A DNA stretch of 64,000 nt from Rhodosorus marinus CCMP1338. Its lineage: Eukaryota > Plantae > Rhodophyta. A program made the position numbers and the translations under genes. Positions 24,735 to 58,732 of this stretch are shown in pieces (the stretch's first letter is position 1; the number at the start of each line of letters is the position of its first letter). The stretch covers positions 434,001 through 498,000 of the forward strand of contig JAMWBK010000005.1 of NCBI GenBank assembly GCA_029953675.1, read 5' to 3'. Below the pieces are notes generated by a model that was given only the letters and a program-made list of their open reading frames with translations, made no database searches and was not told the DNA's origin.

Positions 24735-25022
24735 ATGTCGAGCAAAGTTGTCAGAAGCAATCCGGTGAAGGCGTTCTTCAAGGCCGCTAACGGGGCCTCG
24801 GAGAGGAAGGCTACGAACATCGCGGAGAAGAGAGCTAACAACAAGAATATCGTGGCGTTCAACGGCGGCATGCCCCGTGCTTATAGTAACATGCCTGTTT
24901 GCAGCGCGAAGGACACCGCGAAGAGCATCGGAGAGAAGCGAGCCGACGCCCTGAACATCGTTGACTATTCCGCGGTTAGGCGGTCACATCAGCCAGTTAA
25001 GGTTGTCGAGGAGATGTGGTGA
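24735..25022 (+). CDS. small basic repeat protein, paralog 1 (95 aa), unknown family
   Basis: Clear homology to the ORFs at 27258 and 29224. Doubled IxEKRAxxxNIVx(F/Y) motif; C-terminus KVVEEMW. Confidence 0.85.
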   Translation: MSSKVVRSNPVKAFFKAANGASERKATNIAEKRANNKNIVAFNGGMPRAYSNMPVCSAKDTAKSIGEKRADALNIVDYSAVRRSHQPVKVVEEMW

Positions 25023-27257: not shown

Positions 27258-27563
27258 ATGAAGATGTCTGACAAAGATGGGAAGAGCAATATCATCGTCC
27301 GTGGACTGAAGGGATCATGGAGAGCCTTTGATGACTGGTCCGATAAGAGGGCTGTTAGCATTGGAGAAAAGAGAGCAAACAACAGGAACATCGTGAACTT
27401 CACTGGAAACGAGAGAGCTGAGATGTACACGAACTGGCCATTGCGGACTGGGAAGAGCAGCAGGGCCCAACGTATTGGGGAGAAACGCGCGGATGCCCTG
27501 AACATTGTGGACTACTCTAGGCCTGTACAGATGCCTATCAAGGTCGTTGAGGAGGCTTGGTAA
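27258..27563 (+). CDS. small basic repeat protein, paralog 2 (99-101 aa), unknown family
   Basis: Contains SIGEKRANNRNIVNFT and RIGEKRADALNIVDYS; ends KVVEEAW. ATGs at 27258 and 27264; TATAAG at 27131. Confidence 0.87.
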   Translation: MKMSDKDGKSNIIVRGLKGSWRAFDDWSDKRAVSIGEKRANNRNIVNFTGNERAEMYTNWPLRTGKSSRAQRIGEKRADALNIVDYSRPVQMPIKVVEEAW

Positions 27564-29223: not shown

Positions 29224-29520
29224 ATGTCGAGCAAAGTTGGAAAGAGCAACATCATCGTTCGCGGCCTGAAGGGAGTGGTGAGGAGTGTGGATCAGGCGTC
29301 TGAGAAGAGGGCTGTGAGCATTGGGGAGAAGAGAGCAAACAGCCGGAACGTGGTGAACTTCAGTGGAAATGGGAAGAATGAAATGTACAGCAACATGCCT
29401 ATGAAGTCTGGAAAGGACAGGGCTCGGAGCATTGGAGAGAAACGTGGTGACGCTCTCAACATTATGGACTACTCGAAACCAGCTGCGACGCCAGCGAAAG
29501 TTGTCCAAGAGGCGTGGTAA
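29224..29520 (+). CDS. small basic repeat protein, paralog 3 (98 aa), unknown family
   Basis: Contains SIGEKRANSRNVVNFS and SIGEKRGDALNIMDYS; ends KVVQEAW. TATATAAA at 29080. Confidence 0.87.
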   Translation: MSSKVGKSNIIVRGLKGVVRSVDQASEKRAVSIGEKRANSRNVVNFSGNGKNEMYSNMPMKSGKDRARSIGEKRGDALNIMDYSKPAATPAKVVQEAW

Positions 29521-30060
29521 TTGTAAAACTTGAACTGTTGTACCATGGGCTAATACGAAAACACAGGTTTGAGGTTGTTGTCTAAATTTTTGGATATGTG
29601 CGTAGACTCTCTGAACATAGAAATTTTGGTGAATAAAACAACTGCTTGTTGTGAAATTGGATGTGAATTGCTGTAACCTGCTCTCCAAGGGCGAATCAAA
29701 TCTGTTCAGTTGTAGTCGCGGTTAGTGGGTTGCGTACGTCTGTTGATCATAGGCAAGATGCAAGTGGATGGATTCTTGCTGGGTTAGTCAAATAGAATAT
29801 GTACATCTCCATCGGATTTCCACAATAGATTACTGTTCACGCTGAATTCCTTCTTTGCAAGTGCTTTATGCTGATGGGACGCTTTCCACTCTTAAACAAT
29901 TCCTAGAACATGCGTTTTTTTTATTTATACTATAGTAAGTTTGCAGGTCGAGCTTAGCTCGTCCTCGTAAGTTAGTTCTGTGACTGTAAACCTCTGGCCT
30001 ACTATTGCTTCGTATCAGCGGCTCATTCAGCCTATTTGTTTTTGGTATTCTGTACATACT

Positions 30061-30222
30061 CTACGAAGCGCCCTCAACGCCCCGCTCAGCCGCCCTGAGG
30101 TACTCCACACGTCTTGGTTCCATCTGCCTTATTCCAAACGGCATCGTTCCCATTCGGACACATGGCTTAACAAACACGTCCTCCATCACCATCACAAACA
30201 CCCGACTCTTTCCAACAGACAT
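30061..30222 (-). CDS. 53-aa microprotein, copy A (not in ORF track)
   Basis: Manual translation MSVGKSRVFVMVMEDVFVKPCVRMGTMPFGIRQMEPRRVEYLRAAERGVEGAS. Homologous to 31796-31957, with a shared TATA-containing upstream block. Confidence 0.7.
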   Translation of the reverse strand: MSVGKSRVFVMVMEDVFVKPCVRMGTMPFGIRQMEPRRVEYLRAAERGVEGAS

Positions 30223-30268
30223 ATCACCACCTTCCCCTTTTCCAACTACAACCGCGGCTCTCCTCCTT

Positions 30269-30292
30269 CTCAGTTCGCTTTTATATCACTTA
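30269..30292 (-). promoter_or_regulatory. conserved TATA-containing promoter block of microprotein A
   Basis: TAAGTGATATAAAAGCGAACTGAG, 21/24 identical to 31733-31756. Confidence 0.6.
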
Positions 30293-31271
30293 TAAGAGTA
30301 TCTAAACACTTGATGCTTGTACCATTCGTCCATGTCACTTCTCAACACTATCCAACCTGGATTATATACCCATACAGACCCCGAAAGCATAGCACGCAAT
30401 GCATATGTGTCATCATCACGGAATCTCGAAACCAAACCACAGCCCGCACTTCGAGATGGCAAGAGGTAGAAACTCCGAAATTCATTAGGTTTGCTTTCCT
30501 CGACTAAATATATTTGAAAACTGAGATGAACTATTTCGGGAAACCGGTGATTTGAATGAATTCGTTTTTGGTAGCATTCTCAAAAGGAGTAAGTGTACGA
30601 ACAAATAGCGCTTGAAACTGGACAAATCTATTTGTGGATGACGCCAACACTCAATTGAACGAATTCTGCTCCCTGGCTCCATGAGGGGGATAAGATTGTG
30701 CTTTCTATGATGAGCAGAGCTAGCGATGTGGCGTATGGTGCTTTCTGTTTTGTCTGTCAACAAGCAGCGACGATTGTAAAAACTCGTCGCTTTCCATTAA
30801 GGGGCCATGAGAAGGGCCGGAATGATCTACTCAGAAGATGCTGGAGGTAGGATGCATGACCACACTCGTGGTTAGGAATTGTAGAAGAGAACGCACTGAT
30901 GTACTACTGATCTCGCTCGCATGAGGATTTCAAGGGCACATCAGCCAGTGCCTTGCATAAGGAAGAAATCTATGTGCTCTTCAACTCGTTCACGAGGTCA
31001 TCAGAATTTTCGATAGTTGTGCGTTAGTTACAACAAACATGCCTTTGCCTTACAGATAAACTTACTAAGCTACTGTACTGGGGGATTTCCGAAGATAGAA
31101 TCTCGTTGTTCACCCTCCCAGGAGATGATAAGCTTACACATTATCCGAAGTGAGTTTTCCTTCCACTCAGCCACCGAAACCCAAGTTCAATGCGAAGAAA
31201 ATCCCGATGGGCAAGAACTCAGCCCACACTCCCACAAGTCCATGCCATAGGCCGTACACCACCAGAGATCC

Positions 31272-31326
31272 AACATGATGGTGCCTTTACTGCCAATTAT
31301 TATTGGCAGTAAAGCACCATCATGTT
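31272..31326. repeat. near-perfect hairpin: 25-bp stem, one bulged C, 4-nt loop
   Basis: AACATGATGGTGC(C)TTTACTGCCAAT-tatt-ATTGGCAGTAAAGCACCATCATGTT. Confidence 0.9.
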
Positions 31327-31732
31327 AATAGTTCAACTGATCCCGCAGCTCCCACCGCATTTAGCACCGGTCATCAACCAGCACCAAAATAGATTCAAGT
31401 TTTTCAAATACTTTCAATACGTGCCACATCAGTATTTTCAACGTCCTCCTGAATTCTGCGAAATTCACCATATACCAAAAATAGTTTCTCCTCTTGTCAA
31501 ATAGTTTTAAATGGTAAGAGAACCTCCTACTGTCTGTGCAGTTCCTAAGTGATTGAGCGTGTATCTAATGCGAATAAAAATTGAGCCTTGCGGAGATCAG
31601 CGAAGGTTTTGGATTCTCCTTAGACATCGATTGCTTAGGTGCCGCATGGTTTCGAGGGTCCGTATATGTATATGAGCGTGATCGATGGTGGTTTGAGGAG
31701 AGACACAAGCATCAAGAGTTTAGATAATGCCG

Positions 31733-31756
31733 TAAGTGATATATACGCGGACTGAG
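31733..31756 (+). promoter_or_regulatory. conserved TATA-containing promoter block of microprotein B
   Basis: TAAGTGATATATACGCGGACTGAG, ending 40 bp before the ATG at 31796. Confidence 0.6.
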
Positions 31757-31795
31757 GAGCTGTGTTGTTGTAGTTGTTGGGGAGAAGAAGAAGAT

Positions 31796-31957
31796 ATGTC
31801 TGAGGGAAAGAGAGGAGTGTTCGAGGTCATGGAGGACATGTTTTTGAAGACGGATACACGAACAGGAATGATGCCCTTTGGGCCAACGCCGGTAGGGCCA
31901 AGTCTTGCGCAGTACTTCAAGGATCCGGCGGCTGAGCCTGCGAAAGGACACTATTAG
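31796..31957 (+). CDS. 53-aa microprotein, copy B
   Basis: MSEGKRGVFEVMEDMFLKTDTRTGMMPFGPTPVGPSLAQYFKDPAAEPAKGHY. Shares MS.GK..VF.VMED.F.K...R.G.MPFG with copy A. Confidence 0.72.
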   Translation: MSEGKRGVFEVMEDMFLKTDTRTGMMPFGPTPVGPSLAQYFKDPAAEPAKGHY

Positions 31958-32539
31958 AGAATATAGAGAATAGCAAAATAAGCTTCATTTGGTTGCTGAA
32001 ACGTAGCGAGAGGAGGCCCTGGACGTTAAACCTCAGAAATATGTTTCAAGTACGAGCCAAATCTGGCGAGAAGCCATAACTTAAGAGTACAATGATTCCG
32101 GTTTTCGTCAAGTTGCGCATAGGCCCGAAGTCAGTTGTTCTGACGTTTCGTCTTTGTCTCCCTCCCCTCCCACCTCTCCATTACCGTGGACCCTGAACCT
32201 CCTCTGTTGCCTTCATTTTAGAAATTCGAAGTTGTCGAAGCTCTAACGAGTCAAGCGCTGCGCCGTAGGGTTGAAGCTCATGGCTTCCTAGCACCCCGGC
32301 GTTCGAAACAGTTTTCCAACCAAAACCCTTCCAAGACGTTCTAAAAAATATAACTTATTGCTCGTTCTAGAATTAAGGACCTACCGCCTAATTATGAAGC
32401 CTTCTTCAAAGTTGCATAGTAAACATTAGAAACAATTTCCTCACTTCAAGCTCAATACGACCATTTCAAAATTTAGAAATAAAGTCTTCTTTATTTACGC
32501 ATCTACCCGGACCATCAAGAAAGGCGAGCCGGCAGGTTT

Positions 32540-32960
32540 TCATGGTGACCAACGGAGGATGAGACTTGTTTTAAGAGCGCAAAGACCTCTTATGAGCTTG
32601 AGAGTTCGGTGGAAGATAATACCAAATATAGGGGATACCAGATTCAGTATTGACGTGAATCGGCAGCAAACAGGATAATGGGTAGCAAGCTCTGTTCTCG
32701 ACCTTTTCCTTTCTCCATCACAGACACCTCAAAATATGCGATACCGACTATTTTCAACGTCTCGAGTCTTTATCCGTTTTCACGGATTCACCAATCCCAT
32801 GCGTCCTTACAAATGGTCCTGTAGATGAACCAAAAAGCACCTATCCAGTCAGAAGTGGGATTAGGCGGATTAGTTTAACCAACTCCTTCTATCGCCCCTC
32901 TGACTTCAAAATTCTGCTGTTCATCTGGCACGAAGAAAACTTTCTCCCAATTGGTGTGTT
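32540..32960 (+). mobile_element. decayed Gypsy integrase C-terminal / chromodomain relic
   Basis: Fragments PKYRGYQI and IPTIFNVSSLYPF resemble Gypsy PKY.GPY.I and IHPVFHVS.LKPY. Heavily broken. Confidence 0.35.
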
Positions 32961-33574: not shown

Positions 33575-35197
33575 ATGGGGCGCTTTGTTTTCGGAAGTTT
33601 GTCGGAGACGGGGTTGCGCAGGTGGTTGATCTTTTGTTTGCAGATTTTCGTTTTTCTTTTGGGGAGCGGAAGGGCTTCGAGGTATGATGTTGCTCACGAG
33701 TTCAGTCCCCCCGACCAGTGGGCACTCGCTGAGGGGGGGGTATACGCATCTCGGGACCCGGGGCGTCCAGGGAAAGCGGGTCGATCTGAGATTCTCATAG
33801 ACCTTACGTTTGAGAGGACGACGGCAGATCAGGAGGCTTCTATGGAGATTATTCTGGTTCGCCCTGAGCAGGAGAAAATGCTTGGCTTTACGGATCTGGA
33901 TACGAGTGAAACCTTCTTTTGTTGCACAAAGGACCTGCTTGACAAAAGGGCACCCGGGTGTAGTGAGGTTGGAAAGATCATTTACAATCGACCAAGAACG
34001 CTCAAGTCGAGCCCGCTTAAAGACGGCATGTTCACGGAGCCGCTGAACCCCGAAGTATTAACTTTCAAGAAGAGAGAGAAGGTCACCATCTTTAATGAAT
34101 CTATGCTTATCCACAGAACGGGGATATACCAAGTGCTGTTTTCCACATGCGACGAAAACCTTGGAAACGTTTCTGCAACGGGGAATGTAGCTTTTCGCAA
34201 CCCCTACGGCTATCTACCTGGTCAGCTGTACGGATCTATACCTTTTTACCGAGTTCTGAGTGTGGCCTACGCTGTGGTAACTCTTCTGGTGAGTTCAAAG
34301 CACGTGAATGAAATATTACTTTAGCCGCTTTGTTCCTTGATGTCTTACGTCTCAGTCCAAACTCTGTTTTCGCCTCCCGCACAGTGGCTATTGGTATTCT
34401 TCAGGTATAGACGTGTGTCCCTGCCTATTCATCGGTACATGTCGATCGCTCTCATACTGGGTTTGGCGGAGAGCATTGTTAATGCGTGGAATTATACGGA
34501 GCTGAACGTTACTGGTAGACCTGTCTGCTGCCCAGTTTTTCCTGGGATAGTTGCCGCGGCTATTCTGTCTGTGCTCAAGACGGTCCCCTCCAAAGTGTTG
34601 GTTCTTCTCATTTGTATGGGTTGGACCATTGTCTATGCCTCACTGGACAGGATCAAGAGGACGTGGGTTGTGATCTATGCGTTTACAATTTTTGTGCTGT
34701 CGTTTTTGCATCAACTCGCGGTCCTGACTTCACATCATGAAACAGTGTCACTCAAAGTATTTGTGAGCTTGCCCATGTACGTTTTGGATTTGGTTTACAC
34801 GGTATGGGTCTTCCTGGAGCTGAGAAAAACGAGGAACTACCTGAAGGACCGGGGAGCTACCGAGAAGAACATTCTTTATCGGCGCTTCAAGAACGCACTC
34901 TTGGGCTTCGTCGTTGGAATTTTAGTCTGGGGAGTTTTCGCCGTCGTTAACAGCTTGCGAAGTACCACCGCGGATCGCTGGCGATTCGTCAACTGGAAGT
35001 TGTACTGGATGGTGGGAGGAGTTCCGCCGGGTGGTGTTATGTGGGACTTGATGTACTTCCTACTTCTTCTTGTCATAATTTCAATCTTCTTTCCGGGCGA
35101 GAAAACTTCAAACTACGTTTACAGACCCGAGGACGATCTCAACGTAAATGCAGCCTTGGTATCCGGAACAGGGCGCGATAGTGACGATGACCCGTGA
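33575..35197 (+). CDS. GOST/lung seven-transmembrane receptor family protein (TMEM87/GPR107-like), 2 exons
   Basis: Signal peptide, luminal domain (FCCTKDL...C, RTGIYQVLFSTCD), FRNPYGYLPG motif, then multiple TM helices (LPIHRYM, LLICMGW). Intron 34289-34384. Confidence 0.9.
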
Positions 35198-45954: not shown

Positions 45955-46872
45955 ATGAAGATTCGAATAGAGATTGAAGTAGGTGCTGATGAGCTGAATG
46001 AGGTATCGGATCTGGTTTCAAGTCTTGAGAAGATAGTTTCGAAAGCGAATGGTGGTGGTGATGGAGGTGGGAAGGGAGACCCGAGCTCGGGGGATAGAGT
46101 TTTCAAGGTCGAAGTGCGGGAGGGCTCATCTGAATGTCCGGCGAGGTCTGGAATCCGCCCGCGTATGACGCGTATTCAAGATGTGGAATCTTGTTTGAGG
46201 ACGCTCGACGAGAGTTTAATTGGGTAAGACTGGCATTAACAGGTTAAGCTGGACTCTCTAAACCTTACAGTTACCCTAACTCTGCCCAAATCTTGCCTGA
46301 TTGTGTACAACAATAGGAGCACTACTGAAGTAATAGGATGGTACCTTGACGAACACCCAGACGGATATGTAGACTTGCGCGATCTGTTGTTTTCTCTACT
46401 TTGGGACAATCGTGAGATCGAGGAACGACTACGGGGGCGCGGCATTCCTTCAAGAAACCTTTTGAAAGTTGTGCACCAGATCCGTCTGCCAGGACAAGAA
46501 GACAAAATGCAGCTCTTCAAGGATGTTATATCGACCTCCTTGAAGGGTCTGAAGGCGCCAGATGAGCATAGTGAACGAAGCCGTCTTCTGAGCTACGGTT
46601 ATTCAGAGACAATAGCTGAAATGGTGGCGCTTGACATGGCACCGGCTTCAGCTGCGATTAAGACAATCACAACCCTGCTCAAAAGCCCCAAGACTGGAAG
46701 ATCGGGTTTCGAACTGTTGGATCGAACTTTGTATATCTGTGGGGATAAGCTGCACGGCGTGGATATAGCAGAGCTCCAAGGCGTGCTTGACGTCTGCGGG
46801 GGAGGCTTACCATGGCAGAACAAATCGCGAGAATTCGCCGAGGACTTGATCGCCAAAGCCACATCGGAGTGA
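45955..46872 (+). CDS. hypothetical protein, 2 exons
   Basis: ORFs 45955-46227 and 46303-46872 join in frame through a GTAAGA...AATAG intron containing CTAAC (…ESLIG|STTEVIG…). Confidence 0.65.
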
Positions 46873-57094: not shown

Positions 57095-58732
57095 ATGGCT
57101 TTCGTGAACGTCGGGGCTGTTGGATCAGGGGTCAGAACTAAGGTTTCGGTTGAGTCCAGGGCTGGTACAAGTCGGCGGAGCTATGATCGGAGAATTAGTT
57201 TGGCGAGGATGGTTGACCTGGTAAGTTCAGCTCAGCCCTGACTTGGGTAGATGGGTTCAGTTTCCGGTCTTTACGAGGTTCTAAGGCTGAACCATATGCT
57301 GTGGTGGTTGTTTTCCTTCTTTACAGAACCCGCAACCGCAAGCAGGGAACGTTGACGCGAGCAGGGATGATCTGCTTCTCGCAGAGCTCCGCTTCAGTGA
57401 TCCGTCTCGACTACCAAACATTATCAACTTCAGAAAAGATGATATGGATGACGCCTTTTTTGCATTCGTGGATAAGAAAATTGCAGCCGAAGCGGATCTG
57501 GAGGAGAAGGAAAACCTTTCGATCTTAAAGGAAGCCGTTTTGGAGCTAATTGGCAAGGTCCAAGCTTCTGTAGAGGTATTGTACTCGTTCTATCTGAACA
57601 AGCGCCGGGTAGCAGTCTAAAACGTCAATGGCTTCCGCGTGCAAATTCTTCCCCAAGGCTGCGGAGACTGTTGAAGCACCCGTGCTCACACGTGAGGAGA
57701 GTTTCGAGAAGCTGAGGGATGATATCCTAAACTTTCCCGAAGGCGTGGCAATGGGAGTTGAGAAATACTATTCAGGGTATTCTCTCGATGAAGAGGACCT
57801 TCCTTGCTTCCTGTTTTGCTAGATCGAAATGGCCATCTGAAATGAGGCACAACCTCTCTACTGTCGCAGTATGACTCAGGAATTCCTCGCTTTGCTAACG
57901 GCACAAGCTGAGACCAGCCCGAAGGCGAAGGAAGTGCTTGAGGCTGTCTACAATAAGATGAACCTTGTAATGGCCTCTGCACAGGACAATCTGCTGAGTG
58001 CACTGAAGAGTCCTAACCCGGGAGCCCTTGTTGAAAAGCTTGAATCGTTGCATGCTGATAACAAGCTTGATGACTCGTTCATGCTGCTACTCGCGGGTAA
58101 TCTCGAACAAGCTAAGAAGGCCGGCGTTGAGAACGCAGTTCAGGCATTGCAAGAGGTCCAGAAGCAGGCGATGAGCATTCTGGATGAGAGCGTAACTCCT
58201 GAGCTCCGTCTCGTTCGCAAGCTTCTGCGAGAACCCAATGTCGACGCCCGAAGTGCGCTTATCACCGAGGCTTTTAAATCGAAAGGAAGCTTCATTCTTG
58301 ACGATGAGACGGAGACCAGCGCTGGATCAGCAGTACGTACTCCCCGACTTCGACTAGACGCACAAAAGGGAGAAGACAATGTTCCTTTCGTAGGCACTGA
58401 CGAGTAGCTTCCTATGCTTGGCAAAACAGGTTGACGCGAAGAAGTTCGTTCAGACCATGTCCGACTTGATGAAGAATTTTGGAAATATGGAGGAGGGATT
58501 CCAGCAGAATCTGAAGAGGATTGCAGCAGAAGCCGAAGAAATTGCAAAGGACCTATATGGTTACAAGGAGAAGGATATTAAGGAGCTACAGGATGAAGCG
58601 TTTGAGAAGAGAACTGTTTCCGTGTGGGAGTTGGAGCAGATGGAAATGCAAAGCGAGATGCAGGGTCAGGATACTCCTTGGGAAAATCCGAGGGCAGCTG
58701 GATTTGACGACACTGGAAAGAGAATTGTATGA
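57095..58732 (+). CDS. plastid-targeted helical protein of unknown function, 5 exons
   Basis: MAFVNVGAVGSGVR... transit peptide. Exons join in frame through GT-AG introns. PELRLVRKLL...RSALITEAF weakly recalls Arabidopsis At4g37920-like proteins (unverified). Confidence 0.8.

Follow-up and report, generated by a model that had tools for sequence, protein, structure and literature searches.

The window analysed here is a 64,000-nucleotide (nt) stretch of nuclear DNA from Rhodosorus marinus, a unicellular red alga of the Stylonematophyceae (contig JAMWBK010000005.1, assembly GCA_029953675.1); an exact match to a neighbouring 98-residue protein assigns it to this contig. It carries two homologous open reading frames (ORFs), A and B, which are arranged head to head with divergent start codons 1573 nt apart, and which are, on the evidence presented below, probably small genes.

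ORF A, 30061..30222, minus strand: 53 codons plus TAG, 162 nt; putative microprotein gene, paralogue of B; MSVGKSRVFVMVMEDVFVKPCVRMGTMPFGIRQMEPRRVEYLRAAERGVEGAS
ORF B, 31796..31957, plus strand: 53 codons plus TAG, 162 nt; putative microprotein gene; MSEGKRGVFEVMEDMFLKTDTRTGMMPFGPTPVGPSLAQYFKDPAAEPAKGHY

Two ORFs of 162 nt with a common residue pattern had been placed here in a preliminary description of this DNA. Both the positions and the pattern hold, the pattern requiring a one-codon indel (VFVMVMED versus VFEVMED). One copy had been described as invisible in a mechanical list of ORFs, and this copy is B, which has no entry of its own because it is nested within a 73-residue ORF, 31736–31957, that starts at GTG 31736. 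The A and B proteins are 47–48% identical (BLASTP 48%, E=2e-10), and each is the sole match of the other inside the 64-kb window.

Homology between A and B exceeds the ORFs. By nucleotide alignment of the two arms, it begins some 190 nt before the ATG and ends some 105 nt past the stop, forming a unit of roughly 450–480 bp that is present twice, in opposite orientation, around a unique spacer. The parts of this inverted duplication are as follows.

3′ flank of A, 29955..30060, minus strand: alignable to the 3′ flank of B, with 67% identity in its first 50 nt and a loss of similarity by about +105
Upstream arm of A, 30223..30434, minus strand: homologous to the upstream arm of B; putative promoter and 5′ leader
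Spacer, 30435..31646, no strand: unique 1.2 kb between the arms
Upstream arm of B, 31647..31795, plus strand: putative promoter and 5′ leader
3′ flank of B, 31958..32062, plus strand: TAGAGAATATAGAG at and just past the stop codon, common to A, B and the related contig L002 introduced below

An inverted duplication had been proposed at the outset, with two leader matches, GTTGTAGTTG and GATATGTCTG, among the observations cited. Both matches are present, and the homology around them actually reaches from about −190 to +105. Nucleotide identity between the copies amounts to 69% over the 100 upstream nt, 65% within the ORF and 67% over the first 50 nt past the stop. In global alignments, the 100-nt flanks scored 0.72 and 0.68, while random 100-mers drawn from the window scored 0.57 ± 0.035. 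At the outer and inner ends of both arms the homology tapers gradually.

The upstream arms share several blocks. In A, a TATA-like TATATAAT lies at 30361–30368 (−146) and TATAAAAG at −63. The conserved blocks of B, which are recognisable in L002 too, are GGTTTCGAGGGTCCGTATATGTATATG (TATA-like, 31662–31674), ACAAGCATCAAGAGTTTAGATA and TAAGTGATATATAC. The TATA-like motif stands at −146 in A, at about −130 in B and at −151 in B′, the copy of the ORF on L002. Two more blocks of the upstream arms, AGCATCAA..GT.TA.AT and TA.GTGATA, are likewise common to all three. As far as their sequence goes, these shared blocks are compatible with a promoter that was carried along by the duplication.

The spacer itself holds a near-perfect palindrome at 31272–31326, AACATGATGGTGCCTTTACTGCCAAT / ATTGGCAGTAAAGCACCATCATGTT, with a 26-bp stem, one bulge and a minimum free energy of −40 kcal/mol. 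It lies about 470 nt upstream of B and occurs as a single copy in the window. A small foldback element, an element resembling a miniature inverted-repeat transposable element (MITE) and a regulatory hairpin are candidates for its identity.

Both ORFs fall in a gap in the deposited annotation. The R. marinus genome was annotated by BRAKER with RNA-seq guidance, yielding 8392 genes and 24,821 introns (PMC10250338). Between 29520 and 33575 this annotation contains zero genes, leaving both A and B uncalled, and no protein record turned up for A, B or the 73-residue GTG-start form of B when each was looked up exactly. The pair had indeed been missed, as was suspected when it was first described.

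To find relatives, we searched 1.84 billion cluster representatives exhaustively by HMMER with a profile of A and B. There was one convincing match, P0004, a protein of 89 residues (E=1.6e-13; profile positions 1–50 covered) that is carried on a 1129-nt Logan contig, L002, from run SRR32518361. The part of L002 downstream of the ORF can be aligned to the window over roughly 870 nt past the end of B. Because of this synteny, L002 is orthologous to the B locus and comes from a related organism; we refer to its ORF as B′. The 89-residue product (L002 63–332) begins at a start chosen by the gene caller, an upstream in-frame ATG at −114 that is found in neither A nor B. The conserved ATG of B′ is at L002 177, the second of two adjacent ATGs (the extra one at 174), and its TAG has the same position as in A and B. 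Frame conservation in relatives, on which the preliminary description had made its proposal depend, is therefore seen in a single orthologue, whose ATG and TAG coincide with those of B.

Beyond B′, the searches returned no further members. Two other HMMER matches, a 2465-residue tandem-repeat protein (P0003) and a 1258-residue HEAT-repeat-like protein (P0005), were rejected as spurious, with only about 20 profile positions matched in each, within the repeats. With B as sole query, a word-indexed search of 5.8 billion protein clusters gave no match, and a three-sequence profile searched against the 5.8 billion clusters gave P0004 only. In a Joint Genome Institute (JGI) metagenome scan with back-translated core motifs, there were 376 pattern matches and 0 relatives. 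The family to date comprises three members, all from Rhodosorus-like genomes.

Alignment with L002 also revealed patches of 75–80% identity downstream of B, at 32374–32413, 32453–32492 and 32533–32730 (L002 700–1060). They are annotated as intergenic, and several frames are similarly identical within them. Judged by sequence, they probably represent either a transcript that the annotation lacks or conserved DNA with a non-coding or regulatory character.

Are these frames coding? The chief alternative is a neutral relic, in which some 450 bp of non-coding DNA, or a dead gene, was duplicated in inverted orientation and the frames are merely unbroken, with nothing functional translated. Several observations argue against such a relic. 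The ATG start and the TAG stop align across A, B and B′. The indels that separate A and B within the ORF measure 3 and 3 nt (3, 6 and 3 nt in a protein-guided alignment), all of them frame-preserving, and those separating B and B′ add up to 6 nt net, placed by MAFFT as one gap of 5 nt within the ORF and another of 1 nt beyond the stop. Of the 24 indels in the flanks of these alignments, only 5 have a length divisible by three. We simulated neutral evolution from B at divergence-matched substitution levels, taking the substitution spectrum from the arm alignment and the indel rates and lengths from the flanks, and scored whether an ATG-ORF of 45–62 codons was kept; a version with substitutions only was run as well. 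An ORF survived in an A-like copy with P=0.039, in a B′-like copy with P=0.079 and in both with P=0.003, so that joint survival of ATG, frame and length is poorly explained by neutrality under this flank-fitted model.

Codon usage is likewise gene-like, and in the sense frame only. In a log-odds model trained on 3577 codons of the window's long ORFs, A scored +0.313, B +0.290 and B′ +0.32 bits/codon, with the other five frames negative. For comparison, the three small annotated genes that lie beside the pair (T1–T3, described further on) scored 0.28–0.30, and held-out 53-codon chunks of real genes 0.18 ± 0.10. As high a score was reached by only 1–2% of the other ATG-ORFs of 40–90 codons outside the training genes; among all 338 ATG-ORFs of the window, A ranked 14th and B 17th, amid plain exons.

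Openness of the frames contributes little to this argument, as the antisense strands illustrate. Two antisense frames over the A and B arms are free of stops, with up to 175 residues opposite A; one is open in all three copies and the second in A and B.

Antisense open frame, 29980–30507, plus strand
Antisense open frame, 30005–30295, plus strand
Antisense open frame, 31712–31951, minus strand
Antisense open frame, 31720–31920, minus strand
Antisense open frame in the relative, L002 149–319, minus strand

These frames have no conserved ATG and their codon scores are negative. From the sequence, we attribute them to a purine-rich, stop-poor composition. Given this composition, openness alone is weak evidence, and it is the indel pattern, the positions of start and stop, and the codon usage that carry the coding argument. 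That antisense frames remain open through composition is itself a point against reading A and B as genes, and it favours a relic.

Further points weigh on the same side. Identity is flat from the flanks through the ORF, at the values given above, as a relic would have it. The ratio of nonsynonymous to synonymous substitution rates (dN/dS) is 0.49 for A–B and 0.69 for B–B′, and differences are spread evenly over the three codon positions (14/17/20 for A–B, 12/11/10 for B–B′), with no excess at the third, which again fits a relic. Amino-acid identity is only marginally higher than neutrality predicts (p=0.12 for A–B; p=0.05 for B–B′, by permutation) and is alike in three frames between B and B′ (66–72%). 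A relic would also account for the absence of both ORFs from the annotation: BRAKER, guided by RNA-seq, called no gene here, though it rarely calls genes so short. The synonymous differences between A and B to which the preliminary description had drawn attention (F, TTT/TTC; V, GTG/GTC; P, CCG/CCC; G, GGA/GGG and GGC/GGA) are real, but they show no excess, 5 being observed and 5.5 expected under neutrality.

The neighbouring trio T1–T3 sharpens the point. Analysed in the same way, its paralogues, 1–5 kb away, are under strong purifying selection, with dN/dS of 0.12–0.14 and differences of 20/22/43 over the codon positions, and their flanks resemble each other no more than random sequence. In these respects A and B are unlike the constrained small genes of this neighbourhood. 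If the TATA-like motif near −140 were the promoter, the leaders would carry upstream ATGs. The AlphaFold2 model of the peptide reaches a predicted local distance difference test score (pLDDT) of 51. The phrase "conserved microprotein family", used at first, is thus too strong, with three members, the dN/dS values above and flanks as similar as the ORFs; what stands of it is that the frame is kept in a relative.

Taking both sides together, we regard the neutral relic as unlikely, though it deserves serious consideration. We favour, with moderate confidence, the reading that A and B are real, translated, fast-evolving and unannotated orphan genes consisting of small ORFs (smORFs).

Translation could also take place with the peptide itself being irrelevant. 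A and B would then be regulatory small ORFs, similar to upstream ORFs (uORFs) or situated within a longer transcript, such as a leader or non-coding RNA running from B toward the gene at 33575. Selection would in that case keep the frame open without constraining most residues, in line with an ORF that is maintained under weak residue constraint, and the alignment of L002 for 870 nt beyond B, with its patchy blocks of 75–80% identity, would fit a long transcript. Against this, A has no annotated gene downstream on its strand, T3 being on the other; B is 1.6 kb from the next coding sequence (CDS); homology between A and B ends about 105 nt past the stop, as expected of a self-contained unit; and the three copies have no conserved donor splice site in common. 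We consider regulatory small ORFs improbable here. Much the same comparison applies to the conserved peptide upstream ORFs (CPuORFs) of plants, which A and B resemble in being short, with a frame kept between relatives as in B and B′, and from which they differ in that A lacks an annotated same-strand gene downstream, B is distant from the next CDS and the unit looks self-contained. A first exon of a larger gene was also entertained and rejected, given the lack of a donor site common to the three copies, the conserved stop and the end of A/B homology about 105 nt beyond it.

In its geometry, the locus recalls an old DNA transposon or foldback element, of which the arms would be the terminal inverted repeats and the ORFs incidental: inverted arms of about 450 bp surround a 1.2-kb spacer with a long hairpin. 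The homology fades gradually, however, without sharp termini, the spacer ORFs have no Pfam match, no further copies occur within the 64-kb window, and the B arm is syntenic in the relative. This origin is very improbable. Least probable of all is a structured non-coding RNA encoded by the conserved unit, since conservation at the nucleotide level without codon periodicity would suit it but the unit folds no more stably than shuffled sequence does (z = −0.57 and −0.42), the consensus fold of the three sequences is weak, its covariation term being −3.4 kcal/mol, and there is no Rfam or tRNA-scan match.

If A and B are smORF genes, their predicted products are peptides of 5.7–6.0 kDa with 5–6 methionines each and isoelectric points from 5.6 to 9.8, the charge not being conserved. 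No signal peptide and no hydrophobic or membrane segment is predicted for them. A, B and B′ share the N-terminal core M-[SA]-x-G-K-x-x-V-[FL]-(x)-x-V-M-E-D-[VM]-F-[LV]-K-x3-R-x-G-x-M-[PS]-F-G. The first 30 or so residues are better conserved (17 identities in 29 positions for A–B, 21 in 29 for B–B′) than the tail (about 7 in 22 and 12 in 21, respectively). Structure prediction, suggested in the preliminary description as a check, was carried out with AlphaFold2 on a three-sequence alignment; the resulting model has a predicted template modelling score (pTM) of 0.14, and its only helix spans residues 6–14. Pfam searches of the peptides gave only a sub-threshold match to Spc110_C (E=0.02), and no relative was found among the sequences of the Protein Data Bank (PDB). 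Tryptic digestion of the predicted products would release the following peptides.

Tryptic peptide of the predicted B product: GVFEVMEDMFLK
Tryptic peptide of the predicted A product: VFVMVMEDVFVK

From these observations we propose the following account. A unit of about 450–480 bp was duplicated in inverted orientation; it comprises some 190 bp of upstream sequence, the 53-codon ORF and a 3′ flank of roughly 100 bp. What resulted would be two small genes, divergently transcribed, each from its own promoter. Each copy would be translated into a soluble, methionine-rich peptide of about 6 kDa. The core of the peptide may consist of a short helix followed by the M-P/S-F-G motif, ahead of a fast-evolving tail rich in proline and glycine that is probably disordered. 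We speculate that the peptide binds a partner through the helix and the M-P/S-F-G core, which seems more plausible than catalysis. Since their duplication the paralogues would have drifted apart under weak purifying selection (dN/dS about 0.5–0.7). Such weak purifying selection is usual for young, lineage-restricted genes.

The methionines of the core invite a bolder reading. M12 and M26 are conserved, and A and B have MxM, MxxM or MM clusters. Conceivably, A, B and B′ constitute a very young family found only in Rhodosorus that arose de novo or is changing at extreme speed. Its inverted duplication would then be recent, and it would belong to a local group of five orphan genes, all of them tiny; the methionine-rich core might serve to bind a soft metal, Cu(I) for instance, to buffer redox state or to hold a partner. 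We put this forward as a doubtful proposal, to be held lightly.

The surroundings of the pair are sparsely annotated. Within 10 kb, the annotation holds only three small plus-strand genes, followed by a GOST-family membrane protein from 33575, whose CDS is the next one after B.

T1, 24735–25022, plus strand: 95 residues, annotated trio member
T2, 27258–27563, plus strand: 101 residues, annotated trio member
T3, 29224–29520, plus strand: 98 residues, annotated trio member

The pair adjoins this trio, as the preliminary description had it, with 540 nt separating the stop of A from the stop of T3, which lies on the opposite strand. The trio proteins contain an internal doubled motif, [SN]IGEKRAxxxN[IV]V[xF/Y], and their only relative among the 5.8 billion clusters was a paralogue in the same window, T2. 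In the MMETSP peptide sets, A, B, T1 and T3 were not found, and a near-identical T2 (101 residues) was present. The MMETSP sets come from TransDecoder, whose default minimum of 100 residues would explain why T2 alone appears. Relative to the product of the R. marinus transcript in MMETSP0011, T2 is 92% identical, differing at 8 of 101 residues, and strains under the R. marinus name are therefore already quite divergent. The trio forms an orphan family that is expressed and occurs in Rhodosorus only.

A relationship between A/B and the trio was considered and rejected. The start MSVGKS of A does literally resemble the MSSKVGKS of T3, as had been remarked, but the resemblance is due to chance: hhalign gives a probability of 0.3%, and there is no blastn match between the units. 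The two groups are alike in sharing a 7-kb neighbourhood and in being small, orphan and begun by Met-Ser. They differ in that the trio is tandem, annotated and strongly constrained, with a transcript for T2, whereas A and B are inverted, uncalled and probably weakly constrained.

Among known systems, A and B most closely recall smORF microproteins and orphan small genes, in having fewer than 100 codons, being missed by automatic annotation and lacking homologues outside a narrow lineage, as well as in being predicted largely disordered and probably under weak purifying selection. They differ in that A and B are known from sequence alone, with three sequences in the family. Divergent paralogue pairs that arise by inverted duplication provide a second parallel, with inverted copies, upstream regions of their own and a unique spacer between them, although the A/B unit, at about 0.45 kb, is unusually small.

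The finding is an annotation gap, probably one that concerns small ORF genes confined to a lineage, and it does not amount to a novel type of system. If A and B are real, two genes are absent from the only annotation of the R. marinus genome, and the locus would illustrate how RNA-seq-guided callers and length cut-offs of the TransDecoder type hide proteins of fewer than 100 residues in little-studied algae. With two paralogues, one orthologue and flanks that can still be aligned, it offers a compact example of the evolution of a very small gene soon after its duplication. The evidence gives no hint of a new mechanism or of a connection to any known pathway, and the value of the locus lies mainly in annotation and evolution.

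Elsewhere in the window, the codon-usage model gave its top scores, 0.29–0.43 bits/codon, to short ATG-ORFs on the plus strand at 58457–58732, 57444–57620 and 45955–46227, which are probably exons or small genes.

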